From Blepharisma stoltei ATCC 30299 (Eukaryota; Protista; Ciliophora), in contig CBFDEM010000057.1 in assembly GCA_965603825.1 (NCBI GenBank), forward strand, positions 372,001-436,000: DNA of 64,000 bases, given 5' to 3'. This document shows, piece after piece, positions 5,880-38,838 of the stretch (position 1 is its first letter; every line of letters begins with the position of its first letter). Under the pieces are notes generated by a model. It did not search any database, had not been told where the DNA came from, and was given only the letters and a program-made list of their open reading frames with translations. The translations under genes and the position numbers were made by a program.

Positions 5880-7196
5880 TTATACGTGGATTCTTTGGTA
5901 GCGAGTAGCACCCTCATCAACATCAAATTCTTGCCATTTGTAATATAGAATCGATGATCCAATAAATAGTAAAGTTAAAAAGAACATTGGAAGTATTGAG
6001 CTTCCAAAGCCGAAATCTGCAGTAACTACCACAGTCGATTTAGCTGCTAAAGCAAACCCAACTTTACTATTTTCAGCGTCATAAATTGAATAATATTTCC
6101 TCAAAAATACATCTCCTAATATTCAGAAGTTCCCTTTTTGTAATGAAGTCAGCAGAAGTTGGCAATAAAGTCCTTCCTTCATAAAGTATTCTTCAGGCTT
6201 GAGGACAAAAGCATGTCCTGACCCAAGCTCAAACGAAATATCAGGGTAATCAGTGATTTTGTGTGAAATCCCACAATCACACACGAGAAATCCAAAGGCA
6301 AGGTAGCACTGACCTTTTTGGTGAATTCGCATCATAATATCATTAGCTTCATTTTTCGGAGCCATAATAAGACTTGTTCCAGTGTCCACAATTGCCAAAA
6401 ATGATACGTAATCAATCAGTGTATAATCCACCTTTATGTTTGTCAACAAAACAGTCCAGTAGCCAGTTTCTGGAAACACACTCATTCATATGATGTCTGA
6501 GTTCTGAGCATATGAAGCCAAATCATATCCTCCGAAAATAATTGCAGAGTTAGGACTCGTAATTTTACTGTCCCCAAAAAAATTATCACCAAAATAAACA
6601 GAGAAAATTTTGTTTGTAATCAGTCCTTGTAATTTTATATTGTCCAATAAAGTGTTATATCCTTTAGAAAGCTTTCTAAAGGCTAAGCCTAAAATTCCGT
6701 CAGCTTGCATTCCTTCGAAGTCTTTATTTTGATTGACAGAGATAAATGCTTGATTAGAAACATTTAGAGGGTTCCTATCGCCAATAATAACCCGCTCTTG
6801 GCTTAAATCGCCTTGTGCAAATCCCATTCCATATGATAACGTGATTTTTTCGCCAAGAGATTTATAAGATGAGCTATTAGACGTGTTTAAATAATTAGAA
6901 CATGGGTGACATGCAGTTCTGCAATTTGTTGAAGGAACCCAAAGCCAAGAAGAACCTGTATCAAAAATCACTTTAAATTCTACTGGAGGTGTTCCAAGTC
7001 TTATTTTCCCACTGTATTGCATATTCATGACGTTTTCAAAATAGCTTGATGTGTTGAGATCAATAAGGTTAAGTGAAAGCTCTGCAAGTTTGATAGAATT
7101 TATGTCAATCATTTTCATTGGCTGCGATTTTTCAAGTGGAATTACAATATAGCAAGTCACTGCTAGAGCAAAAATTCAGCATAGTAAGAATCTCAT
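5880..7196 (-). CDS. Pepsin/cathepsin D-like aspartic protease (family A1) with C-terminal TM anchor (438 aa)
   Basis: Signal peptide MRFLLC(W)IFALAVTC; catalytic motifs FDTGSS and VDTGTS; YGMG flap; DGILGLAF; (W)ILGDVFLRKYYSIYD with W=TGA; C-terminal TM followed by a tail ending YQRIHV. Three track ORFs join in one frame. Confidence 0.93.
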
Positions 7197-7506
7197 ATTT
7201 AATTCAGAAATTGAAGAAAAACTATAAAACCTATGCAATCTAAATTATTTTGCTCCTTAGAAGATTTTTATAAATGATTAAATGAGCCTTAAATTTGTGT
7301 TTCTTATGGATATGCCTGTAGATTTGGCAAGCTAATAAAATCCTTTGGATTATTTTTTGCATAGGAAAATAAATTATGAAAAAAATGAAAATTTTAAACT
7401 TTTTATTAATCTTAAAACAAAAATTGGAATTTAGTTATTAATGTTGGAATAAGCATAATTAATTATAAAATAGGTCTCTAAAATCTTATCTTCTCTCTTA
7501 TAAGCT

Positions 7507-9642
7507 TTAAGTAATTATGGCATAGCAATTAGGACACAGCGCATGCTTGGATTTTTTCTTTGTTCAATCATTCAAACAATCTTTATGAAATATATGATAG
7601 CACACTGTGATTTCTTTTCTGCTCTGGGTAACTTTTTCCAAGCAAATCGTACACATAGGCTCTCCATAAAAATCAAAGCCCTGACCGTGCTCGACAACTG
7701 ATCCTTCTTTATCTTTCGAATCAATGCTATTACAAGGCTCAGAATCCTCAATAATATTTTCATCGCTGTTGATTATTTCTGGATTTTGATTATCAATTTC
7801 TTGCTGAAGATTTATCCTCGAGGGCAGATGCTGCGCATGCTGCTGATGAGCAGCAGACTGCAAGATCATAGTTTCATTAAGAGTTAATGGATTGCCTCTT
7901 GGCCCAGCCTCTAGATGGGTGGCTTCACGTGTGCGATCGCATGCTCTGCAATACATAATTATGAGTATAGCAATACCAATAATGCTAAATAAAAATTACC
8001 AAAGAAAAATAAGTCCTCCAATTATACTAGCGATTAAAGCAATTTGAGAAGCAGTAATGCTTGAATCGTCATTATCTCTTTTATGAGGGCCCCCATGATC
8101 ACCATGATTGCCAGGACCACCAGGAACAACAGGACCATTTGGAATGCCGGGATCACCTTTACCGTGGCAGGCTCAATTATCAAAATTACATTCAGGATTA
8201 TCACACTTCTTATCACATTCATTGTTATATAGAAGCTCATCTGAGCATTTGCACTTTTTTGATATATTACAATCGCCATTATCGTAATTACAAATCTCTT
8301 TATTGCACTCTGGATCGCATTTACCATTTGTAAGTAAGGATTTATCGCATTTACAGACACAAGATCATCTGTCATAATCAAATTCTGTATAATTACAGGA
8401 AGGATCACAAACTGAGTTCTTTAACATCTTTGGGGTGCAGGCTAGAGGCGGTGAGTTGCCTCTGCAATCCTCAGCATCGTTTGCACACATGCCGATATTG
8501 CATTTTTTATCACATTTCCCATTATTTATGTCTGATAAATTACAAAGATATGAGCAAGCGTTGGTGCATGATAAGGGCCGAGAGGATTTGAAACTTCCGC
8601 AGAATAAATCCCCGAAATATGAAATGTTTCCCAAAAATTGTATAGAGTTAATACTAATAGAGGGTGCAAATTGGAATTTATGGGTACTTGAACCACTAAG
8701 CTCACTATCAATCATATTATTGCTTTGGTGATTGCCCTTTCTTCATGAATCGTCAACAAGCGATCTTATTTTTGCAGCATTAGCATCGAGCCATTCCAAA
8801 ATAGATGAGCTGCAACTATCTGAGTAATCAGCCTTACAATTGGATGCTACTGCATTTAAATATACAAAAAAGTCCCCCCAATAAATTTTTTTCTTCATGA
8901 CATAATTAAATAAAATTAGCTCAAAAACTGTTTGATTAATCATATTTCTCCCTGTGCTTACATGTGTAGAGTCACTTAGACAGTATTTTCCATTTCCATA
9001 GCAATTTTCTGGGCTACAATTTTGACAGGTAAAATAATTAAAAAACACTCTAATGTTGGCTTGGTGAATAGGCAAAGGAATCATGTACTTGTAAATTTCT
9101 GAAATAAAATGAGCATCGATGTTATGGTCACCGGTAAGCCGAATGTCAATGTCTAGCTTATTTGAAACTGATATCTCTGTATTAAATTTAACAATAATTT
9201 CATAATCCTTATAGCTTTTCCAAATATTGCCATTAGCTTTTGAAATTATTACAGCAAAAATATCAATATTCTTATCCCAATCGGGGGGTAGTGAAATAAA
9301 ATCGCATTCTACCTCATTATCGTTTTTATTGCTTTCAAAAATGACACCTCCAGCGCCAGTTTGTTGGATATTATAGGTAGCCAATGCATAGTCACAGTCT
9401 TCATTATTTACAAACACTACTATGCTCGAGTTAAACCTAGAATTCAAACCAGAGCATGGATTTTCATACTGTGGCAGAAATGCAACGAATCCTTTAAATG
9501 TGTCCTTGATATGAGGATTGCCAAAATTGGCAGTGGTTGCTGGAACTATAATATTAGGATAATTTTGGAGAAGGCTCTCAGGCCCTATAAGTTCTAACCT
9601 ACAAGTTGCAATTCCGAAAAGCAAAAATAAAAATTTGTTCAT
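7507..9642 (-). CDS. VSR-like PA/thioredoxin-core - 4x LNR - TM - RING-H2 receptor E3 ligase, paralog A (about 706 aa, one intron)
   Basis: Signal peptide; PA domain (ANFGNP..IQQTGAGGVIF); VSR-like core (NCYGNGKYC..TGRNMINQ..FAPSISIN..LFCGSF); 4 Cys/Asp repeats of the form NGKCDPECNKEICNYDNGDC; TM; RING-H2 CTICLE..CYHIFHKDCLND(W)..LCPNC. Confidence 0.85.
7985..7999 (-). other. 15-nt spliceosomal intron GTAATTTTTATTTAG
   Basis: Removing it eliminates an in-frame TAA and restores a continuous TM (GGLIFLCIIGIAILIIM). The same position is used in both paralogs. Confidence 0.9.
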
Positions 9643-9687
9643 ATTTTGAAGTTTATAAACTTCCACCAAACTACGATTATTAACTTC

Positions 9688-11775
9688 TTAATCTAATGAA
9701 TTATCTTCAAATAAATGTTTACTGCAATTTGGGCAAATAGGCTCTTTGGCAGCTTTAACTATCCACTCTGATAAGCATTTCTTATGGAAGATATGATGAC
9801 AATTTGTGATTGCTTTATCCTTCTTCGTGATTTTGTCAAGGCAAATCGAGCAGACAGGATCTCCATAAAACGCATAACTTAAATCAGAATTTACTCCTAT
9901 TTTATTTTCCATTCTGCCTTCAGTCTTCGAAAACTCTGATTCTTCATTGCTTTCAACGACCTCCTCATCGCTATTTATAATGCATGGCTCTTGGACTAAC
10001 TGAGGATCTTGAACTTTGCTCTTCCAATGCCTTCTTGAGGACAGTCTAATCATATGCCGCTCATGGGTAGGTGGTGCTCCATCAGGCTGCTGAATTTCAT
10101 TGATAGTTAAGGAGTCAATTTCAGGATCACTCATTGTTCTTGCATTCTTCTTTCTTCTATACAAAATATAGTAGACGACAAAACTGATAATTCTAAATAA
10201 AAGTTACAAAACGAAGACAAAACTTCCAGCGATTTCTGCTATTAAAGCTATTTGCCAAGTAGCAAGGCCATCATCTCCTGAGCTGCTTGTCTCATTTTTG
10301 CAAGCATAATTGTCGAAATTGCATTCAGGGGTATTGCAATCTGAGTCACACACATCATTATATAGCAAATCATCACTACAGTGACACACTATTGTTGATG
10401 AACAGTCTCCGTTGTCGTATTCACATATTGCTGAGTTGCACTCGGGGTCGCATATGTCGTTTTCCAATAAAGTGGAATTGCATCTGCAAACACATAACCA
10501 ATTATCATAATTATATTCAGTCACATTGCAGACTGAATCGCAAACGGAATTACTTCTTAAAGCCTCAGTGCACAATGTAGATGTACCTTTGCAGTCTTCA
10601 ACGTCATTCGAGCATTTTTCACTTGCACAGTTAATTTCACAGTTTCCATTATTTATTCCTGAGAGTTGGCAATTATCTGAGCAATAACCATAACATGAAG
10701 AAGGATGATGGAAAAAACTCTCACAAAATAGCTGACTGAAATAAGAAAGGTCTCCAAGATATGCTATCGAGTTTACAGTTATTGATGGCGTAAATCATAT
10801 ATTTTTATTAGATTTTTCAGCCATTTGAGTATCAATTACTGTGTTATCCCATAACTCATCATTGTGATTTTTTCTCCAAGAATAGTCAATAGATGTCCGA
10901 ATATCCTTGATATCGGCGCTAAGTCAATGTATGACAGACTCGCTGCAGGCATCTGAATAATCATTTTTGCAATTAATTGTCATAGCATTCAAATAAGCCA
11001 AAAAGTCTCCCCAATAATCGTTATTTCTTTGAACATAATTTAGCAAAATAATTTCATACAAAGTTTGATTAATCATAGCTTTTCCAGTGCTAGAATTAAT
11101 GGAGTCTTTTAAGCAATATTTACCATCAGCATAGCAGTCATTTGCATTGCAATTTTGACATGAAAAATAGTCAAAATATATTTGAATGTTAGCTTCACCA
11201 ATTTTTAGAGGTACCAAAAATTTATAAATTTTTGAAATAAATTGAGCATCTAAAATATTGTCTCCTGTAAGACCAATCTCAATGTTTGGAGAATTTGAAA
11301 CTGAGATTACTGAGTAGAATTGGACCTTAATAGGATTATCCTTATAGCTTTTCCATAAATCACTATGGGTGCCAGAAATCATCACAGCAAAAATTGTGAT
11401 CGATTTATCCCAGCCATCTGATAGAGAGATTAGCTTGGTGGCTATTTCAGTATCATTTAAGGCACTATTAAAGATAGCACCTCCAGCACCTGACTGCTGT
11501 ATATTGTATGTGATTAAAGCGTAATCACAGTTTGCCTGATTAATGAAAATTGCTATGCTTGAACTATATTTGGAATTCAAACTGGAGCATGGGTCTTCAC
11601 TGTCAGGTAAAAATCCAATGGAACCTTCGAAATCTTCTGAGATATAAGGGTTGCCGAAATTGGCAATGACTGATGGAACAACGCCCTCATCATATTTTTG
11701 ACGCAGTGCTAAAGGCTCGATAAGAATAAGCCTGCAAAAAGCTCCTCCTAAAAGTAAACTGTAAAGGTGTTTCAT
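9688..11775 (-). CDS. VSR-like - 4x LNR - TM - RING-H2, paralog B (about 690 aa, one intron)
   Basis: Colinear with paralog A. RING-H2 CSICLD..CHHIFHKKCLSEW..CPNC. Confidence 0.85.
10193..10207 (-). other. 15-nt intron GTAACTTTTATTTAG
   Basis: Same position inside the TM as in paralog A; removes an in-frame TAA. Confidence 0.9.
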
Positions 11776-12156
11776 TTTTAGAAGATAAAATTTGGATAAA
11801 ATCATTTAAAGCTAATTTTTTTAGAGAATATTTGCTAAATTTTATTTAACTAAATAAAGATTTTGCGATTTTTGCTTCAATTAAGCTAATATGTTTTATT
11901 TAAATTTAATCACACTCTTTAATACCTTATTGAGTAGAAAAATTCAGATAATTTGATAAAGAACTGCTGCATAAAGTTTAATGTAATTTAAAAAAAATTA
12001 AAACTAAATTTAATTTAATTACAATCATTTACTCTAAATATCTTACATATATTATGCAAAAGAGTTGTAATTGTTAATGAGAATTCAGAATTTTCTCAAA
12101 TTTGTTTAAAGCTTTTAGTATAAATTATGGCTTCTATCAATTAGAGTATAGACAGT

Positions 12157-14229
12157 TTAACAAAGGTTTTTGTTGCAATTAGGGCACAAAGATGCCTTAC
12201 CCTTTTTATTCTTCCATTCCTTTAAACACCTTTTGTGAAATATATGGAGACACCTTGTTATTTCTTGCTTCTTCTTTGATACTTTCTCTAAACAAATTGT
12301 GCAAATTGGCTCTCCATAAAATTCATAGCCCAATTCACCTCCTTCAGCTGGTCTTGAGGCTTCTGATTCTTCATTGCTCGCTATTATTTCACTGTTCAAT
12401 ATCTCTGGATACTGCATTATTCTGGGACTATTATTAACTCTCTGTTGTGAGTTTATTCTTGATGGCAATCTAATTGCATACTGCTGATAAGGGTTTGCCC
12501 CTTGATTCTCTGCATTATTTCCATTAAACGAACTATTTCTTGACTCTCCTCCAGAGTCGTTATTTCCAGGTGATGATAAATTCCTTGACCTTCTGTATAC
12601 AACGCACAAAATAATAGATCCTAATATTCTAAATAAAAATTACAATAGCAGAAAGCTTCCTCCAACAATACCAGCAATTAGTGCTATTTGTGAATTTGTA
12701 ACGCTTACACTTTTATCATCATCGTCATCATCTTTGGTGTAGTTTTTGCAATCATAATTATCATAATGGCATTCGGTTGTATTACACTCTTTGTTGCAAA
12801 CACCATTATATAATAAATCATCAGAGCAACTACATTGTGAGGTACTTGCACAAGCGCCGTAGTCGTAGCTGCAAATTTCTGAGTTACAACCTGAGTCGCA
12901 CTTCCCATTATTTAATAAGGTAGAGTTGCATTTGCAAACGCATGCCCAGTTATCATAGCTGAAATGAGTTGTATTGCACTCTTGATCACAAACAGAGTTA
13001 TCTAATAAAGTACTATTGCACCCAGAGTTTAAGCTTTTACAATCTTCGATGTCAAAAGAGCACTGAGATTTGACACACTGTGATTCACAAATTCCATCAT
13101 CTATCATGGATAAGCTGCAATATTCAGAGCAATATCCATCACTTGACACAGGCTCATCTGTAAAACTGTCCTTAAAAAATTCAGGAAAATATTCCATCCC
13201 TCCAAGAAACTTCACATCATTTATAGTAATTGATGGCGCAAATCACAAATTATTACTTTTTCAACTATTCATCTGGCTTTTAAGTATTTGATTATCTGAA
13301 AAAGCATTATTTTTAGTGGATGACCACGATGCATTATTCAGTATTTGTATATCTTCTGAATTAAAGCCTAGCCACTCTAAGACATAATTGCTGCAAGAAT
13401 CTGAATAATCTGACTTGCAGTACTCGGAAATGACTTTTATATAAGTAAAAAAATCTGCGTATGCATCTCTGTATTGTGCCACATAATCCAGCAGATTGAT
13501 TTCGAAAAGTGTTTGGTTTATCATGCTTCTCCCTGAAGATGCACTCATAGAATCATTTAAGCAATATTTTCCATCAGAGTAGCAGTCATATGCACTGCAA
13601 TTCTTGCAGGAATAATAATTAAAATAAATTTCTATGTTTGCATCATCATGTGACAATGGCATCATATACTTATAGATGTCTGAAAGAAATTTCAAGTCAA
13701 GGACATGATCTCCCGTAAGTTCAATCAAGATTTCAGGCATTTGAGATTGACTAACTGTAGAAAAAAATTTAAGCTGAATTTTATAGTCCCCATAGTATTT
13801 TCAGGTGAATGTAGAAGTGTATGATGCCATTACAGCAAAAATTTCAATGTCATTATTCCATCCATCTGGCAAGGAAATTACTTTGCCTTGCACTTGATAG
13901 TTGCTGGAGGTGCTGTTAAATATAACACCTCCGCCGCCACAAAGCTGAATTTCATAAACGACTTGGGCATAGCTGCATGCTAAATTTGTGTTAGGTATAA
14001 ATACAATAGTGTCTAAATCAAACTCCAAAGTTAGCTCAGAGCATGGATCTTGACTATCTGGCAAAAAAACAACGTATCCTGTAAAAGTATCATTAAAGTA
14101 AGGATTCCCAAAATTAGCAGTGACTGATGGGACAATTTGATTTGGATAAAAATTAGCCAGTTGGCTTGGTTGCTGTATTTGTAATGTGCAAAAGACCGCA
14201 TCAATTAGAAAAATAAAAAATTGTATCAT
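12157..14229 (-). CDS. VSR-like - 4x LNR - TM - RING-H2, paralog C (about 685 aa, one intron)
   Basis: Colinear with paralogs A and B. RING-H2 CTICLE..CLHIFHKRCLKEW..CPNC. Confidence 0.85.
12629..12643 (-). other. 15-nt intron GTAATTTTTATTTAG
   Basis: Identical in sequence to the paralog A intron and at the same TM position; removes an in-frame TAA. Confidence 0.9.
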
Positions 14230-15187: not shown

Positions 15188-16288
15188 ATGAATATGGAAA
15201 AAGATAAGAAAGGTCAAAAGCCTCGCCAAACGGAAGAGCGGAAAGGCTTCTATTCAAATCAAAGCAACGATGCTATAATAAATTTGCAAAATATAGAATC
15301 ATCAAATAACTCAGGAGAGGAGCTTCGAAGAGGCATAGATAGATGCTCCAAGCCTGCAAATATGCAACCTAAAGGAGGTTATAACTCTATGAATAATTTC
15401 TATCAGCCTACCTCTCATACTCCAGCAGTTATTGAAGCTAATGAGCATATTCATTCTAAGTCTTTAGAATATAAAGAATACCCTGTGTTTCCTATCAGTC
15501 AAAATTGGGATGATTATCCGGAAACAATTAGCAAAAACTGAATCCAGCTTGAAAAGATGAAAGAAATTGCAAAATTTAACCCTAATTTTAGGAAAAATAT
15601 CGATTTTATTAGATCAAAGGGTTTTGCTGGCTGGAAAAAAAGCAGAGGTGATGGAAATTGCTATTTTCGTGCAGTTATGGTTAGATTCTTGGAGTTTCTT
15701 TTCAAAGTTTCAACTCCAATATACTATACTTTAAGATTCCTTAATACTATTAAAAAGCATACAGAAATATTTCTTAAATCAGGACTATGTGTGTCTGAGC
15801 AATTTATACGTGAAAAAGAAAACCTTGATCGGTGAATTAATTATTATTTAGAGATAAAACAAAAAGACCCTGTAAGTGCTTTCCTCAGTTTAATTTTTTT
15901 CACTCAAAATTTGGAGTTTGATAAGGCATTTATACACACTGCAAGACTAATAACAGCATCTTTTCTGCTTTCCCAAGATGAAAGAATTTCAATGTTTTTT
16001 GACGAATCTCTGAATTCCCAAATCAGCAAAATCCTAACAATGGGCGAAGAAGCTGAAGGACTCGCGCTATTAGCACTTCCTTTATCTTTGGAGATTAAAG
16101 TTGTCCAGTATAATTTATTTGATACTGCTGTCAACGTCCTCGAGTTCCCAGATGATAGCCCAGGAAACTTCGAAGTCTCAATTATTAGAAGAGGAGGCCA
16201 TTATGATATTCTATATAAAATACAAGAATTAGAAGATGAACAATATAATTTTGAAACAGCATGCTACAATTTCCCTCTTAATTCTTAA
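15188..16288 (+). CDS. Otubain-type OTU deubiquitinase (peptidase C65), 366 aa
   Basis: Catalytic RGDGNCYFRA and RRGGHYDILY. Three track ORFs join via TGA=W. Confidence 0.85.
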
Positions 16289-18123
16289 ATTATTATGCAC
16301 TTGCACCTCATATTCCCTTCTATTTGTTCTTCATGCCTTTTCTTTTTAGTGTCGTTTTTTGATAAAATTCTTTTTAAGTCCCCAATTTCTTTTTGATCGT
16401 CAGATCCTACGTTTTCGCAAAATACTGAGCGAAGTAGGGCATCAGCTTTGATTCCGTATACAAAATCGTTAAAACTGACAACACCGTTGCATTTGTCAAC
16501 TAGTCTCATCATTCGGCTTCAGACTTCATCAATCATTGTTTTGAGCTCTTGAGAATCTGTTTTGGCGAGCTCATTTGCATAGGGTCTCAAAAGATTTTCA
16601 AGCAAACTTTGGACTTCAGGTCTTTGCAAGTAGCCAGAATGGTCAGCGTCGTAAGCACCAAAACAAACACGAAGCTTGTCTTCAAAATTGCCTTTTGACA
16701 GAATAGATAAACAAATGGTCAGTTCTCTGAAATCCAAATACCCAGATTTGTCTTCATCAAATTGATCAAACATCACTTCTGCGCTGCTCGCAAGTCCTGG
16801 GGACAATTTTTGGATAATTTCTAAAAATTCTGGCTTTGAAAAACCAACTTCTCCTTCTTCTTTATTTTCTTCTACTTGCTTGCTAATGTTTTGAGGCAAA
16901 TATACAGTTTTCCTTTTCACTAAGCCAGCTGGAGCTGGTTGTTCTTTTGGTTTGTTTTTCTTTTTTTCTTGCATAACTCTGTTAAACTCTTCTTGAAGCT
17001 GCTTGATTTCAGCTTCCGAAAAATTTGAGCATTTTTCAAGCCTTTTTACTATAAGTCTCTCACAGGTTTTCCATTGTTGGGCTCTATAGTCTCTAGCCTC
17101 TCCTCTTAGCCTATTAACTCTTGTTTCAGTTATTTCAACGGAAAATTCTCGATAGAAATCAGGGAGTCTTTCTGAAACAACGGAATCAGAAAAATTTTTT
17201 AAAATTTTGATGGGGTGCTCACCTTTGTCAATTAGGTCGACCGAGATACCGACTAAGCATGTTACACCTTTTATTAAGGCTAAAGAGCCTTCTAATGCTA
17301 GTTTATCCCATAAGAAAATGGTACTGTCCAAGTCAACTGTGTTGACAAAAAGCTGCACTAAGAGTTGCAAGGAGAAAAAATCAGAAAACTCGCTGGAAGT
17401 TAAGTTGTTGTTTTTCATAGATGGAATTAAATGGTCTAGTAGCCCTGCAATTACAGTCGATTCAATATAAAAACCATTTAGTGAGTTACCATGCTTGCTC
17501 CCGATATAAAAATCTGGTAAAAGCCACTTTTCTATCAAATAGCAAAGCATCCAAAATGCATTATTGTGGTCTAAAAATAGCAGAAGCCACGTGCATACAT
17601 AATTCAGTCCTTGACAATACCCAATATTCCCATTCCTTCCACAATATGCTCTGAGGACTCTTGACAAATCATTTTTATAGTTTTCGCCAATAACCCGTAG
17701 CAGTGTTTCATGAAGATCAAAAATAAACGTCTCAGGATCTGTCCTTCCTGTCATTATATCTTTTCTGATACCTTCTTCATCATCAGGAGAAATTTCCACT
17801 GATGCATAAGTATCGATATTGCCTTCATGAGAGTTCATATAGTCCCAGGCTCCAGAACTTCTCATCCATGATTCCCCTCTTGAGGTGTTATGACACCACA
17901 TAATAGAATCTCTGCTGATTATTTTTCCTATGGTTGAAATTCTTACGTAACACTTTTGGCATACTTCATGCTGGCCTCTTCCTTCTTGACAAGAAAATAG
18001 CTCAATTGTTTGATTCACACAGTTGGAACAATAATTATTCCTGCAGCGTTTGCAGAGAGCTGATGCCTCGTTCTCATTGCAGATCGAACAAGGAAGTTCT
18101 TCGTACTCTGAAACTTGTTCCAT
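16285..18123 (-). CDS. Zn-finger (FYVE-like) - TBC RabGAP - EF-hand protein with C-terminal CaaX (612 aa)
   Basis: CxxC..CKRCRNNYCSNC..EVCQKCY; TBC motifs IRKDIMTGRT and YCQGLN; EF-hands DEDKSGYLDFRE and DADHSGYLQRPE; ends CKCIII. Confidence 0.85.
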
Positions 18124-20101: not shown

Positions 20102-21301
20102 TTAAATAGACAGCAATGCTTTTCTTGCTGAGTCCATGATATAAAAACTTCCACACACTAAGAGAATTTCATCATCTGTCATATCTCTTATGGCTTCACC
20201 CATAACAGCATCGATGTGCCCTGAAATACTTATCTTATCTCTATTCAAACCTAAAGCATTATTTTTCAAAATTTCTGAGTCAAATAGAAGAGGATCATCA
20301 TTGGAGACTAAATGAATTTTATAAGCATATTTGCATATCACATCTAATATCTTTGTAGGATCTCTTGATATTCCATAAGCTAAGATAACTCTAATATTTT
20401 TATTTCTGCATATTCTCTGTAAATCATTGAAAAGCCTTTCAAAAGCCATTGGATTGTGCGCAACATCAAAAACAACTTTTCGTCCTAAAATCACTTTTTC
20501 CTCCATTCTAAAAGGAGGCCTGGATTTTATCCCATTCTCAATAGCTTGGTCAGGGATTGAAACTCCTTTATTTTTAAGGGCTTCAATTACTGTCTTTGTG
20601 ATTCTGCTATTTTCCTCAATTGCAGTCTCATAGCTATCTCTTTTATCCACAACAATTAGCTCAGATGCTTTCTCCTCAGCAATCTTACGTAATAGATCTA
20701 TAGGAGTATTCGGCCCAATAACGCAAGGCTTTCCTGGTTTTATCACCCCTGATTTTTCAATTGCAATATCTTCAATTGTGTTTCCAAAATATTCGCAATG
20801 ATCCAGTCCAACTGAAGTAATAACAGATACTTCAGGATTGACAATATTGGTAAAATCACTAGTCCCTCCACTCCCAACTTCTATAACTGCAAAGTCAACA
20901 TTGTTGTCGTGAAAATATTTGAATCCTAAGCATGCCACTATAAGCGAATAATTCATCATAAGTTTCTCATCTTCTATAATTGCTTTTATTATTGGCGTGT
21001 TTTCAACTATGTACTCTTTTGGTGCTTTTTCAGCATTTATTTGAAATCTCTCACAAAAATCAAATAAATGAGGAGACATCATAAGACCAGTTTTATACCC
21101 AGAATGATGCAAAATTGATGCACATTGAGTAGCCACAGTGCCTTTTCCGTTTGTCCCTGTTATGTGTATAGTTTTAAATGGGAGATGAGGATTCTGCAGC
21201 TTTTTACAGACTTTTGTAATATTTTCCATAGGATTTCGACATCTAGTTCTTTTCAAACTATAAAGAAAATCGAGCCATTTTTCATAGCTTTGCACAGACA
21301 T
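20102..21301 (-). CDS. folC: Folylpolyglutamate/dihydrofolate synthase
   Basis: IHITGTNGKGT, SPHL..ERFQIN, AVIEVGSGG, ITSVGLDH, IAIEKSGVIK, DVAHNP, CGSFY. Confidence 0.93.
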   Translation of the reverse strand: MSVQSYEKWLDFLYSLKRTRCRNPMENITKVCKKLQNPHLPFKTIHITGTNGKGTVATQCASILHHSGYKTGLMMSPHLFDFCERFQINAEKAPKEYIVENTPIIKAIIEDEKLMMNYSLIVACLGFKYFHDNNVDFAVIEVGSGGTSDFTNIVNPEVSVITSVGLDHCEYFGNTIEDIAIEKSGVIKPGKPCVIGPNTPIDLLRKIAEEKASELIVVDKRDSYETAIEENSRITKTVIEALKNKGVSIPDQAIENGIKSRPPFRMEEKVILGRKVVFDVAHNPMAFERLFNDLQRICRNKNIRVILAYGISRDPTKILDVICKYAYKIHLVSNDDPLLFDSEILKNNALGLNRDKISISGHIDAVMGEAIRDMTDDEILLVCGSFYIMDSARKALLSI

Positions 21302-21304
21302 TAT

Positions 21305-33212: not shown

Positions 33213-33510
33213 ATAATAAAGAAAAATATTAGTATTTTCGTTATTTTTGGATAAAAAATTACTTAAATTATAAATAAAATTCAATAGGTTGGTGAACAAT
33301 TTTAGTGTCATATCACTTGCACTGATCATTATTTAAATTTAAATAAGCATTTCTTGATAGCTGGCTAATATGCTAATTATATTAAAATTGTAAGCATTAA
33401 ATCCTTATGCAATCGTTGCTGCTATGGATCATTCCTAACTTCTTCTAGAATCTCTAATTTTCTTGTATTTCTATTGATTTTTCCTTCTTTGAATTCATAT
33501 CTCATACAAT

Positions 33511-35697
33511 ATGTCTAATCAAGGCAAAAGAGGATTAAATTCCGCCTACATGCGAGCAACCCTTCAAATGTCCAAAGAGCAAGCTCAAGAGACGTGGCAA
33601 TCTCTTGAAAAATCAATTTTTTTAATCTTTGATTTCCAAAATTCCAAGCTGAGTTTCGAAGAGTTATATCGGAAAGCTTACGATCTTGTAATTCAAAAGC
33701 ATGGAGATTTGCTCTACAAAGGCCTTTCTGAGACAATCCGTCAGCGCTGCCTAGTAATTTCTGCAATGATTTTATCAGAAGCTCAAATCTCACTCTTTCC
33801 TGTGCTAAACAAATCATGAACAGACTTTAAATACGCAATGAATATGATCAAAGATATTTTGATGTATATGGACCGAAATTACGTAAAAAGCAAAAACACC
33901 ATCCCTGCATATGAACTGGGGCTAAATATTTTCAAACAAGAAATCCTCTATAGCCCAAACATAAAAACTAAGATTTCTGAACTGCTGATCCAGAGTATCC
34001 AAAATGAAAGAAATGGGGAATTTATTGAAAAAGAGCTAATAAGAAGTATCGCATTTATGCTAGTAGAGGTGGGAATAGGGACGAAAAACGTGTATATTGA
34101 ACTCTTTGAAGACTCATTTTTAGATGAAACTAAAAGATTCTATGAAAAAGAAGCTGAAGACGCAATTATTAAATTATCTTGCCCAGAATTTTTAGGTCAA
34201 GCTGAAAAGAGGCTAAAAGAAGAAAAAGCTAGAGTTGATAGCTATCTAGATCCCTCCACAGAAGAAAGGCTACTCCAAATCGTCGATCATTCCTTTATAG
34301 AAAAGCACTCAAAGACTTTAATTTATATGGAAAACTCTGGATGCCAAAAAATGATAGAGCAGATGAAAATTGATGATTTAAAAAGGATGTTTAAGCTGTA
34401 TTTAAGAGTTCCCTCCTGTCTCCGACATATCTCTGACTGCATGTCTGCCTTTATCCAATCTGAAGGTTCTCTCATAATCGCTTCTTCAGAATACAAAAAA
34501 AATCCAGTCGAGCTTGTAGGGGCTCTTCTTAAACTCCGAGATATGTTCAATACCATCGTAACCCAAGCTTTTGACAGAGACTCTATGATGGAAACAGTCA
34601 TGAAAATCAGCTTTGAAAACTGCATCAACGCGAACTCTAGAACTGCCCATGCTCTTGCATTATATGTTGATAAGTTATTAAAAAAAGACATCAAAGGCAT
34701 GAGAGAAGAAAACATTGACATTCAATTAGACCAAATCATTATTCTTTTCAGGTATATTTCTGACAAAGACGTTTTCGAAAATTTCTATAAGCAGCTGCTT
34801 GCGAAAAGACTTTTGCAGTCACGATCTTTGTCTGATGACGCAGAGAAGCTGTTTATCACGAAGCTGAAAACTGAATGTGGGTCACATTTCACGTCAAAAA
34901 TTGAAGGGATGTTTACAGATATGAGATTTTCCAGTGAGTCAGTAGAAGATTTTCAAACAAATGGCGATATGGAGATCGAGCCAAGTGTACTTACAGCTGC
35001 ATATTGGCCTTCTGATGTGGTACTGCCTATTAGCTTGCCAAGAGAAGTGATCCATGAAGCAGAACGATTCCGAAAATACTATTTGGGAAGACATAGTGGA
35101 AGAAGACTCTCATGGAAAACGAACATGGGCACTGCTGAAATCCGAGCTATACTTGGAATAAACAGTTCTCGCCATGAATTATTTGTATCTACCTATCAAA
35201 TGTCAGCGTTGCTTCTTTATAATGACCGTGAATCGCTAGTGTACGAAGAAATCACTCAAGTGCTGAACTGCTCTGACCCTGACTTTGAAAAGCATATGCT
35301 GGGACTTGTAAAAGCTGGGATTTTAGCTAAGTCTACTGCTGGAAAAGAAGTCTCAATGTCGACTGAGTTCTTTTTAAATCCTGAGTTTAAATCTAAACTC
35401 TATAGAGTAAAAGTTCCTGTTTTAGCCAAAAAAGATAATGAAATATCTACTCAGAGTGAAGTTCCAGAAATAGTTGAAGACGACAGAAAGCACATGATTG
35501 AAGCTACCATAGTTAAAATAATGAAAACGAGACGTAAAATTGATCATGCAGGGCTGCTAGGAGAAGTTACCAAATTAATATCATGGAGGTTTGTGCCATC
35601 GCCTAAGCAAATCAAGAGTAGAATTGAAAATTTGATTGAAAGAGAGTATATCCAAAGAGATGCAGAAAACCCTAATTTTTATAATTATGTCGCCTAA
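33511..35697 (+). CDS. CUL3: Cullin, CUL3-like (728 aa)
   Basis: LSFEELYRKAYDLVIQKHGDLLY, S(W)TDFKYAMNMIKDILMYMDRNYV, DKDVFENFYKQLLAKRLL, neddylation motif IEATIVKIMKTRR, IENLIEREYIQRD..YNYVA. Confidence 0.9.
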
Positions 35698-35715
35698 TGT
35701 CTCTTTTTATAATAA

Positions 35716-38700
35716 ATGTCTAAGTGGAACTATTTAGCTAGTGCTCATAAATCAAGTGCGGTTGCTGCATCTTTAGTCTGCAATTTTACGTCCCCTGACG
35801 AAAGAAATCTTCTAGTTGCTAAAGGCAATAGAATTGAAGTTCATACTCTGACCCAAGAAAACATCATTCCAATTCAAGAATTTTCCCTGTTCGGCACAGT
35901 TCTGTTTATGGACAAGCTGCATCCTCAAACTGGGTCAGATTTTTTATTAATTGCGACAGAACCGTTTAATCTCAGTCTGGCGGTATTTGAAAATGGAAAA
36001 TTAACATTGAAAGAATCATATCCTCTGAAAGAAAGGCAGGCAATTAAACTGGAGTATTTTTCACTTGTAAATTTGGATCCTCACCAAAGAGCGTATGTTA
36101 TGCATATATATAAAGGATTGATAAGAGTGATAGGGATCAAGCAGAATTTTACAGTAGGAGTTTCGTTCAATGCAAGGATTGAAGAAAGTCCTGTCATTGA
36201 TATGAGATTCTTACAAAATTATCAAGAACTGCAGCTAGGGATTATTTTTAAAAAAGAAAGTAATTTTGTGTTTAAAGCTTTCCCAGTCAGCTTGTCAGAG
36301 AAAAATCTAGGAGAAGCTTTATGGAGTGTTACTATTGCAGAACCTTGCACAAAGTTCTTAAGCTTAGACCAAAGTAGTATTGGCATTATCGACATGAATT
36401 CAATAAAAATCTATCGAGAACAAGAGAATGTCCCTTCATTGTCCACAAACGCAGAATTCGGAAAAGTTTGTGTAGTGCATAATATTGATAACCAAAGATG
36501 GATTGTGGGAAACCAAGGTGGAAATTTGTTTATTATTTTCTTGGGGTGTGAACTTAAAGTTGAGTGTCTAGGAAGATGCTCAATGGCAAGTAGCATTTCA
36601 TACTTAGACAATAATTATCTTTTTATTGGGTCTGCTTGTGGTGATTCACAATTAATTAAAGTGCTGACAGAAAGGCAAGAAAATTCTTTTATATCAGTTG
36701 AACAAAAATACCAAAATATTGGCCCAATTTTGGATTTCAAAGTGATTGAAGGCGAAAAAAAGGGTCTTTGTAATATAATTTCCTGCTCAGGTTATAACCT
36801 TGATGGTTCTTTGCGTTTAGTTAATAAAGGAATTAGCGTTACCACAGAAATCCAAATGGAGATCGGCAATGTAATTGGTCTATATACCCTGCAAGTAGAA
36901 AATACTGATTACAATCATATAATTTTAAGCTTTATAGATGCTACTAGGATACTGAAAAACCAGAACGAAGTTTTAAAGCCAATCACGTACCCAGACATAG
37001 ACTCAAAAATATCATCAATTTACATTGCAATGACAAAGTTTGGAATAATCCAAGTTACCCGCTTTTTTATTCAGCTCTTAAATTTCCAGTGGCAGCGGGT
37101 TTTCATTATAAATTCTGAAGAAATTCGAGAAAATTCTGAGATCACGCTTGCCTCCTCATCTGACGATAAAATGTGTGTTGTGCTTAATGGGCTGGAGATA
37201 TATGAATTTTCTATAAGAGAAAACCTTTTAGAAAGAACTATCCAATGAATTTCTCATAATGAAATTGCTTGCATTGGGATGTCAAATAATCTGGTTGCGG
37301 TTGGACTATGAATTGAGCTAAATATCATTGTATTTGACGCAAATAGCTTCACTGAGATATGGAGAGACCATTTAGGAAGCGAAGTTCTTCCTCGATCTCT
37401 AATGTTTGCTGAGCTTGAAGATATAGAATACTTATTTGCAGGCTTAGCTGATGGTCATTTGCTTACATATACCTTGCCACATTTTATAAAAAGAAGTCAG
37501 CTGATTGGCACTCATCAAGTTGTCCTAAAGACCTTTAAGTACCAAAATAAGGTTTCTGTATTTGCGGGATGCGATCAGCCTAAGATTGTGTATAGTAATC
37601 ACCATAGACTTATAACGTCAACAGTCAACTCAGACCCTGTACTTTGTGTTTCACCGTTTGGGACAAGAGACTTTCCTGACTGTCTAGCTCTAATCAGTGG
37701 AAGATCACTAATTATGGTTTCTATTGAGGATTTACAAAATTTTACTATAAGAACTTTTCCTCAAGGACTTACTATGAGAAGAATTGGGATGATTGATGAT
37801 AGTTTTGTATGCTTAGGCAGAAATCAGGCCGGAGTTGACAGTCTTTTATTGCTTTCTGGAGCGTTGACCATAGAGTCTACGCACTCATTTGAATACTCCG
37901 AGTTAGTGAATACACTTCTAGTAGATAAAAATAGAATATTTGTGGGAACTGGCATAACTGAGGAAAGGATTACAGATCCAAAATCAGGGTTTATCCGAAT
38001 ATTTGCTATCAGAGATCGGCATTTCTATGAAATTTCCAATTTAAACGTCCTTGGCGGTGGTGTTTCTTCCTTAGTCCCTATGAGCAATGACAAACTTATT
38101 GGAGGTGTGCATAGCGTAATTCATTACTGAAGAATTAACTCTGAAAATCAAATAACTTCAATTGATAGCAGCAACAAGATCACTTACGTGCTTTGTATGG
38201 ACACTTATAATAACTTTGTAGCTATAGCTGATTTAATAAAGTCAGTCACAGTTTTCTCTGCAGATGAAGAAGGACTTACGATTGTTGCAAAAAATTATTC
38301 CGCAATGTGGCCAACCTGCATCCAATTTATATCTAATACACTTATAGCAGTTGCTGACATGTTTGGGAATCTTTTACTACTGGAAATTCAAAATCATATG
38401 AAATTGAACCCTATTGGAGGAATCCATATAGGAGAAAATATCAACTGCATGAGAAAAGGGACACTTGTACAAGTAAGATCTGATGAATTTCCTGACAATG
38501 TAGAAAGTATCCTTTTTGCCACGACCAAAGGAACCCTTGGCGTTATAGCATCTTTACCTCAAGATATTTACAATATCTTGAATCTTGTTCAAGAAGAATT
38601 AGGCTTAAGGATACCACAAATAGGGAATATGAGTCTAAAAAGTCATAGAACTCCTGAGATTGAGAAACAAAGTATTAATTTTGATTTCTTTTTGGATGGA

Positions 38701-38838
38701 GATTTTATAGAAACGTTTTTAGATATTTCGCCTGAAGAACAGTCAACTATTTGTATGGATGTCGGGATGAAGCTTGGGAAAGACTTGAATGTGCAGGATC
38801 TCCAAAAACTAATTCTCTCATTGTCGAAAGTGCATTAA
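35716..38838 (+). CDS. DDB1: DNA damage-binding protein 1 (1040 aa)
   Basis: WNYLASAHKSSAV..CNFTSPDERNLLVAKGNRIE, ISYLDNNYLFIGSACGDSQL, NIGPILDF, GSLRLVNKGI, VGL(W), FLDGDFIETFLD, LSKVH. Three track ORFs share one frame. Confidence 0.92.

Follow-up and report, generated by a model that had tools for sequence, protein, structure and literature searches.

Three neighbouring minus-strand genes in a 64,000-nt window of the Blepharisma stoltei genome each encode a protein in which a vacuolar sorting receptor (VSR) ectodomain is followed by LNR repeats, a transmembrane (TM) segment and a cytosolic RING-H2 domain. The reading we favour, with modest confidence, is that they are single-pass receptor E3 ubiquitin ligases of a heterotrich family, similar to GRAIL and ZNRF3 and convergently built from a VSR. 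Directly shown are the architecture, the splicing, the VSR fold, the intact RING Zn ligands and the tandem expansion; so are the missing recycling tail and VSR cargo arginine, and an intron and RING signature common to the trio and small TM-RING proteins.

Genes A (gA; 14229-12157, 685 aa), B (gB; 11775-9688, 690 aa) and C (gC; 9642-7507, 706 aa) share 43-47% pairwise protein identity and, as the preliminary description had proposed, are free of internal stops once TGA is read as Trp and one 15-nt intron is removed from each. These introns (12643-12629, 10207-10193 and 7999-7985 on the minus strand, respectively) are GT..AG, lie in phase 2 and occupy an identical position within the TM segment; in gA, retention would introduce an in-frame TAA. 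Seven of nine TGA codons align with Trp in a paralogue, and the conserved RING Trp of gC is itself encoded by TGA. For gB, the public model CAG9333852.1 is spliced identically and starts at an ATG 10 codons upstream (11805), giving 700 aa. Transcript evidence consists of assembled contigs from four runs of a single study, the run type being probably RNA; exactly the 15 nt are missing from these contigs in 4/4 runs for gB and gC and in 3/4 for gA. Such contigs drop rare variants and give no measure of intron retention. They span from ectodomain to RING exon, which bears out the earlier claim of a single polypeptide and, together with the public model, rules out an artefactual joining of two genes; contig depth is zero at intergenic positions 11838-12036. 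The three genes are expressed. Contig differences, treated as alleles without a matched DNA run, comprise 22 synonymous and 11 non-synonymous changes, with 20% synonymous expected (p = 6e-9).

All three proteins have a type I layout, with a signal peptide (judged by hydrophobicity and alignment), a luminal PA domain, one TM segment and a cytosolic RING-H2 domain. Pfam was run exon by exon on stop-free pieces, on which the PA (E = 2e-4) and VSR_TRX (E = 3e-5) matches remained below cut-off; Notch/LNR matched at E = 1e-14 to 1e-19 and zf-RING_2 at E = 1e-9 to 1e-11. The PA and VSR thioredoxin-like (TRX) domains lie at approximately 13167..14187 in gA (about aa 15-355; alignment to gB and gC, and tree), 10713..11733 in gB and 8580..9600 in gC (PA E = 2.2e-4 and VSR_TRX E = 3.2e-5 on the piece covering aa 1-299). 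As read in the genome, gB and gC exceeded the cut-off of the VSR TRX model PF25011 (46 and 40 bits), and a family-only profile matched AtVSR1 across PA and TRX (8R4Y, E = 3e-26) and the PA domain structure 4TJV (E = 4.9e-12). An AF2 model of the gB PA-TRX region, folded from the exon-1 part of the protein (P0001), to which its alignments and searches were likewise confined, with VSRs included in the underlying alignment, reached a pLDDT of about 83-98 and retrieved 9B1R in Foldseek (E = 1.9e-19). Its PA domain superposed on the VSR1 structure 7F2D in VIA-align (Z = 18.5, rmsd 1.9, 128 aa) and less well on GRAIL (Z = 13.1) and ZNRF3 (Z about 12), RMR being absent from the PA structures listed. 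Aligned to the TRX domain, GILT gave Z = 12.7 and DsbA Z = 12.0. The disulfide cysteines of this domain are kept, and the CxxxC of plant VSR TRX domains is missing both in the trio and in ciliate VSRs. Judged by family profile and predicted fold, the VSR identity of the ectodomain is settled. The PA-TRX unit of AtVSR1 is a domain-swapped trimer.

Four LNR repeats follow, at approximately 12747..13152 in gA (four Pfam Notch stretches, E = 1.9e-19; Notch2 NRR, E = 1.4e-5), 10293..10698 in gB (Pfam Notch E = 1.5e-14, with the Cys register) and 8160..8565 in gC (motif register and a genome Notch match), the last followed by a Gly/Pro/His insert ahead of the TM segment. The call of four LNR-type repeats holds, with a refinement: repeats 1, 3 and 4 have six Cys each and the Asp/Asn pattern of Ca2+ ligands (PF00066), but repeat 2 is reduced in all three proteins, lacking the fifth Cys and the last Asp, the latter also being lost in some of repeats 3 and 4. 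After a linker of about 100 aa come the RING-H2 domains, at 12175..12303 in gA (zf-RING_2 E = 1.5e-9), 9724..9852 in gB (E = 3.1e-11; the RING of RNF13 is the top PDB match, E = 1.9e-6) and 7525..7653 in gC. Each retains all eight Zn ligands together with the Ile, Trp and Pro that usually form the E2-binding surface. The residue following the last Cys is Asn, Ser or Tyr, whereas the usual activating residue is Arg or Lys, so ligase activity may be weak.

The trio resembles plant and alveolate VSRs (BP-80, AtVSR1) in its signal peptide, PA domain and thioredoxin-like centre, in equal order and fold, and in its single TM segment. It differs in carrying LNRs in place of the plant EGF repeats, of which it has none; ordinary ciliate VSRs have neither. 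All ten ordinary B. stoltei VSRs end in a YxxPhi tail and lack RING and EGF, whereas the trio has exchanged this short tail for the linker and RING-H2, leaving a single YxxPhi in the gA linker and none in gB or gC. The RGxCxF arginine is also gone from the trio, and from 20/23 family ectodomains compared with 10/47 ordinary VSRs; in AtVSR1 the equivalent Arg95 is required for C-terminal cargo binding, which R95M abolishes (PMC8740768). RGxC is kept in three family members (P0003, P0005 and P0089) and is missing from four of the ten ordinary B. stoltei VSRs, so its loss in the family does not prove a loss of cargo binding.

From its intron and RING signature, the TM-RING half matches small (LNR)-TM-RING-H2 proteins. 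In B. stoltei, twelve genes for small TM-RING-H2 proteins, which lack a PA domain and carry at most one LNR or an ectodomain of another kind, have the same phase-2 15-nt TM intron and the RING signature of the trio, the small relatives overall being (LNR)0-2-TM-RING-H2. These ATL-like type I proteins (L063-L078, several with LNRs) lack PA and TRX; in front of the RING they retain a GLD-like segment, which has disappeared from the trio. A RING tree on 75 columns was weak, with two starred branches, and gives no direction for the fusion. The ten PA-family matches in the genome, a lower bound, are all ordinary VSRs, with no RMR or simple PA-TM-RING gene detected among them. A merger of the two plant vacuolar sorting receptor classes, as first suggested, is unsupported, in view of this lack of a detected RMR, the small-protein features of the TM-RING half and the VSR1-like PA fold. 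GRAIL/RNF128, RNF13/167, RNF43/ZNRF3 and plant RMR likewise are type I proteins with a luminal PA domain and a cytosolic RING-H2, but there the PA domain makes up the entire ectodomain and adjoins the TM segment, whereas in the trio it is VSR-type and separated from the TM segment by about 350 aa of TRX and LNRs. By analogy, the two probably share a logic of capture outside and ubiquitination inside; in GRAIL and ZNRF3, substrate capture depends on the PA domain (PMC3937510). The likeness is probably convergent, given that the B. stoltei genome yielded no simple PA-TM-RING gene.

The family comprises at least nine loci in the B. stoltei genome, in tandem expansions. Members also occur in Stentor coeruleus and on other heterotrich-like contigs, and the fusion is seen again in Stentor coeruleus OMJ67287.1 and at four other loci; the preliminary description had called for a search of ciliates and other eukaryotes, and none were found outside heterotrich-like contigs. 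Word-index protein searches are nearly blind to this fast-evolving family (two matches, self only and four matches) and uninformative on absence. A metagenome pattern scan, limited by short contigs and introns, yielded 37 VSR-like loci, with LNR or RING downstream only in the one already known, and Atlas searches gave only sub-0.9 feature matches and structure matches to ordinary VSR clusters, with no VSR+RING cluster. The architecture had been described as new to the describer, and we too found no account of it in literature that excluded most subscription papers. In an unrooted quick tree, family ectodomains are set apart from 46 ordinary VSRs (SH-aLRT 99), with long branches and tandem birth-and-death. 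Members carry 0 to 5 LNRs; one relative (L040) lacks the RING, Stentor-type members have RING Cys2 replaced by Asp, L038 has His5 replaced by Cys, and frame-broken copies lie on one contig (C36).

In the receptor-ligase reading, a duplicated VSR ectodomain would have been fused onto an existing (LNR)n-TM-RING-H2 chassis. The ectodomain would use a surface distinct from the canonical carboxylate clamp to bind membrane proteins by their luminal or extracellular portion, or else a ligand, with the LNRs serving as a disulfide- and Ca2+-stabilised stalk where plants have EGF repeats. The cytosolic RING would then ubiquitinate the captured protein, the ligase itself or both, sending them through endocytosis and ESCRT to the lysosome or food vacuole, as with GRAIL and RNF43/ZNRF3. 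Binding partners probably vary among the three paralogues. A more far-reaching version, to which we give a low probability, is that a sorting receptor became a ligand-gated ubiquitin ligase, in which luminal cargo or prey or partner proteins bound by PA-TRX would cluster the RING tails, the LNR stalk would act as a Ca2+/pH switch, and the paralogue arrays, sharing an interchangeable TM-RING chassis, would diversify what is recognised into a repertoire.

Closest to the preliminary description, which saw a cargo-sensing receptor, is a one-way, RMR-like receptor whose TRX domain or changed PA pocket would go on binding soluble cargo, vacuolar or secretory. Receptor and cargo would enter the multivesicular body together, RING self-ubiquitination replacing YxxPhi recycling. 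The whole PA-TRX fold with its TRX disulfide, the three members with RGxC, the LNRs of GNPTAB (profile match E = 1.7e-12; its Stealth catalytic domain is absent from the trio) and the PSAP motifs, of the ESCRT-I-binding type, in P0002 and in the tail of RING-less L040 all speak for it. The missing arginine and terminal YxxPhi weaken it, ten intact ordinary VSRs are available for sorting, and the long branches and birth-and-death suit changing ligands better than housekeeping cargo; we regard it as possible but doubtful. It is improbable that the proteins are ER/Golgi quality-control ligases of Tul1/Hrd1-like logic, their GILT/DsbA-like TRX recognising misfolded disulfide-rich surface proteins for RING-marked degradation. 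The structural matches and the plentiful Cys-rich surface modules of the genome fit such a role, and one has been speculated for the VSR TRX domain (10.1101/2023.12.15.571892), but the CxxxC is lacking, there is no evident ER-retention signal, the proteins are single-pass, and fast divergence with broken copies is unlike core quality-control machinery.

A Notch-like receptor, in which LNRs shield a cleavage site until ligand-induced shedding frees a RING fragment, or intron retention yields a soluble decoy, seems very improbable. Four LNRs do adjoin the membrane, with the Cys/Asp pattern of the Notch NRR, and a retained intron would end translation mid-TM. However, in the gA and gB pieces next to the membrane Pfam detected Notch/LNR alone and no NOD/NODP (HD) domain, on which ground a Notch-type NRR is rejected, and the trio has neither the EGF array nor the ankyrin/RAM region of Notch. 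The LNR module is very common in the genome (at least 133 matches) and variable in number across members, and the protease-shield analogy drawn earlier falls with these observations. A decoy switch is not needed because the same stop-containing intron occurs in ectodomain-less paralogues (L066, L074 and L077); the contigs show the spliced form, within their blindness to rare variants, and an in-frame stop is expected anyway in 3n introns under NMD surveillance, as Jaillon and colleagues reportedly noted in 2008. Least probable of all are catalytically dead adaptors with a vestigial RING or one serving only as a heterodimer partner: the atypical residue that follows the last RING Cys, the substituted ligands elsewhere in the family and the frame-broken copies would fit, but the trio RINGs keep every ligand, none of the three genes is silent and most of the contig variants are synonymous.

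Under the receptor-ligase reading, the 'capture outside, ubiquitinate inside' design of GRAIL, ZNRF3 and RMR would have arisen independently from a VSR, and the probable donor of the chassis, a small TM-RING protein, would still be present in the same genome. The VSR ectodomain, known until now from recycling cargo receptors, could then acquire a ubiquitin output, and the TM-RING proteins of heterotrich ciliates would form a modular system whose ectodomains can be exchanged. For the question of VSR TRX ligands the family supplies a set of natural variants, and because Stentor has a member and is amenable to RNAi, its function is testable.

The three genes encode spliced, expressed type-I membrane proteins in which an ectodomain with the fold of a vacuolar sorting receptor (VSR) is joined to an intact RING-H2. 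Reading through TGA raised the summed length of long open reading frames in the window from 58% to 94%. Genes A (14229-12157), B (11775-9688) and C (9642-7507) follow one another head to tail on the minus strand. A single TAA breaks each gene and sits within a 15-nt GT..AG intron, at an identical phase-2 position inside the transmembrane (TM) segment; the spliced products of 685, 690 and 706 aa share 43-47% identity and contain 40-44 cysteines. Seven of nine TGA codons stand opposite Trp in a paralogue, among them the one that encodes the RING Trp in gene C. Contigs assembled from four sequencing runs, which belong to a single study and count as RNA by an automatic guess, lacked exactly the 15 intron nucleotides. 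The three colinear genes of about 690 aa that the preliminary description had read with TGA as Trp and 15-nt splicing are confirmed. That description had named a separate RING transcript as a refuting observation; this is not borne out, as the intron-less contigs run from the ectodomain into the RING exon and depth across the spacer between genes A and B is zero. Base differences in the contigs (22 synonymous and 11 non-synonymous, with 20% synonymous expected) fit purifying selection if they represent alleles. The public counterpart of gene B, CAG9333852.1 (Blepharisma stoltei, 'RING-type domain-containing protein'), starts 10 codons upstream at 11805; paralogue alignment prefers 11775, and the RNA contigs, among those listed, extend only to 11788.

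A gene for a pepsin-family aspartyl protease (5880-7244, -) directly follows gene C in the same orientation. Such proteases are typical lysosomal cargo, and the adjacency is probably chance. Elsewhere in the window are a TBC and EF-hand gene (16285-18123, -), a Mur-ligase-fold gene, probably folylpolyglutamate synthase-like (near 20102-21304, -), and a cullin gene adjoining an RSE1/DDB1/CPSF1-type beta-propeller gene (33439-38838, +).

On stop-free pieces, Pfam clearly recognized Notch-type (LNR) repeats (E 1e-14 to 1e-19) and RING-H2 (E 1e-9 to 1e-11), with PA and VSR_TRX only weak; when the genome itself was read, VSR_TRX exceeded the cut-off in genes B and C. An AlphaFold2 model of the gene B ectodomain (exon 1 only; mean pLDDT 85.7, LNR part mostly 47-79) had VSR1 as its top structure match. 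The modelled PA domain matched VSR1-PA with Z 18.5 and rmsd 1.9, GRAIL with Z 13.1 and ZNRF3 with Z about 12, and the modelled central domain was alignable to GILT and DsbA. Because ordinary VSRs were present in the folding alignment, independent evidence comes from a profile built from family members only, which covered PA and TRX of the AtVSR1 luminal domain (E 3e-26); the proposed PA and VSR central regions are thereby upheld. The claim of four LNRs stands with a refinement: repeats 1, 3 and 4 have six cysteines, and repeat 2 is reduced in all three genes, where Cys 5 and the final Asp are missing.

AtVSR1 grips its cargo at the C-terminus through Arg95 in the RGxCxF loop, and the R95M mutant no longer binds it (PMC8740768). 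An equivalent of this arginine is missing in the trio and in 20 of the 23 family ectodomains, versus 10 of 47 ordinary VSRs. The ten ordinary VSRs of B. stoltei are PA-TRX-TM proteins; they lack EGF repeats and a RING, and each has a short YxxPhi tail. The trio instead has about 100 aa of cytosolic linker, in which no sorting motif is common to all three; the plant TRX CxxxC is missing from the trio and likewise from ciliate VSRs. Lacking three defining VSR features, the trio is not a VSR family member in the functional sense. A one-way cargo receptor seems less likely than the reading favoured below. Since VSRs are already known from alveolates (PMC5264500), no special origin has to be assumed for the ectodomain.

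An exhaustive HMM search with the family returned 85 proteins. A second tandem cluster in B. stoltei (contig 36, 952.7-968.2 kb; L034-L036) holds five copies with Pro-rich cytosolic linkers and one LNR each, four with an additional reduced repeat; copies 1 and 2 are frame-broken, and copy 5, which lacks the TM intron, carries a stalk of SNSNPGKD-type repeats. On contig 50, a TRX-TM-RING gene has neither PA nor LNR. The same design, with the 15-nt TM intron and RING exon, occurs in Stentor coeruleus (OMJ67287.1, L041), in L043 and L044, and in a marine-metagenome contig (L038/L039) with two LNRs and RGxC kept; L042 shares the design without an intron and reads TGA as Trp. The second RING Cys is Asp in the Stentor-type members L041, L043 and L044, and the second His is Cys in L038. 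Protein P0005 (L040, 6001-8200), with close relatives P0088 and P0089, has a VSR ectodomain, five LNRs, RGxC and the 15-nt TM intron, and its RING-less tail contains two further 15-nt introns followed by two PSAP motifs. PSAP, an ESCRT-I-type motif, also lies upstream of the RING in P0002. Several further matches stop within the TM, presumably at the intron. From their 15-nt introns, we infer that contigs without a species label are heterotrich. In an unrooted quick tree, all 23 family ectodomains and one long-branch row were separated (SH-aLRT 99) from the 46 ordinary VSRs, which came from plants, algae and ciliates. Protein, cluster and metagenome searches, insensitive for this family, found no members outside heterotrich-like DNA. 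The trio architecture is conserved across a ciliate class.

All ten PA-family matches in the B. stoltei genome (41.5 Mb, 64 contigs) were ordinary VSRs, with no RMR/GRAIL-type gene detected among them. Family aside, the RINGs closest to the trio's belong to small type-I TM-RING-H2 proteins of the same genome, which share its RING signature. These signal peptide-(LNR)0-2-TM-RING-H2 genes (L063, L064, L066-L069, L071-L078; contigs 51, 62, 63, 31, 54, 11, 36, 16, 53, 20, 2 and 18) include 12 with the trio's phase-2 15-nt TM intron, whose ectodomains have one LNR, none or something else; L065 places a large Cys-rich ectodomain on a RING of this type. They look like a modular membrane-ligase chassis. 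LNRs are common in the genome, with 133 matches or more; many of these form arrays at ~7-8 kb spacing close to contig starts (C8, C30, C53), which suggests a large LNR-rich surface-protein family. In the simplest history, an LNR-TM-RING gene of a heterotrich ancestor would have acquired a VSR ectodomain by fusion, after which LNRs were gained and lost and the genes duplicated in tandem; the RING tree lacks the strength to prove in which direction the fusion went. A decoy function of the intron's in-frame stop is not needed, since the same intron occurs in genes with no ectodomain to release.

In GRAIL and RNF43/ZNRF3, PA domains help to recognize substrates, and the RING ubiquitinates membrane targets, leading to endocytosis (PMC3937510). 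We moderately favour a similar working for the trio, by analogy: the PA-containing ectodomain would take part in substrate recognition, and the RING would ubiquitinate membrane targets for endocytosis. The residue after the last RING Cys is atypical (Asn, Ser or Tyr), a caution on predicted activity. We give very little credence to a dead adaptor. A ligase for secretory quality control appears improbable. Pfam found no Notch HD domain after the LNRs on stop-free pieces, and Notch-like shedding or a decoy role is highly improbable.

Literature searches found no description of the trio architecture, and database labels of family proteins read only RING-type or hypothetical. The trio is at most a putative RMR/GRAIL orthologue, but it probably works in a similar way to RMR/GRAIL proteins. 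Its logic is already known, and domain shuffling onto a TM-RING chassis is common.
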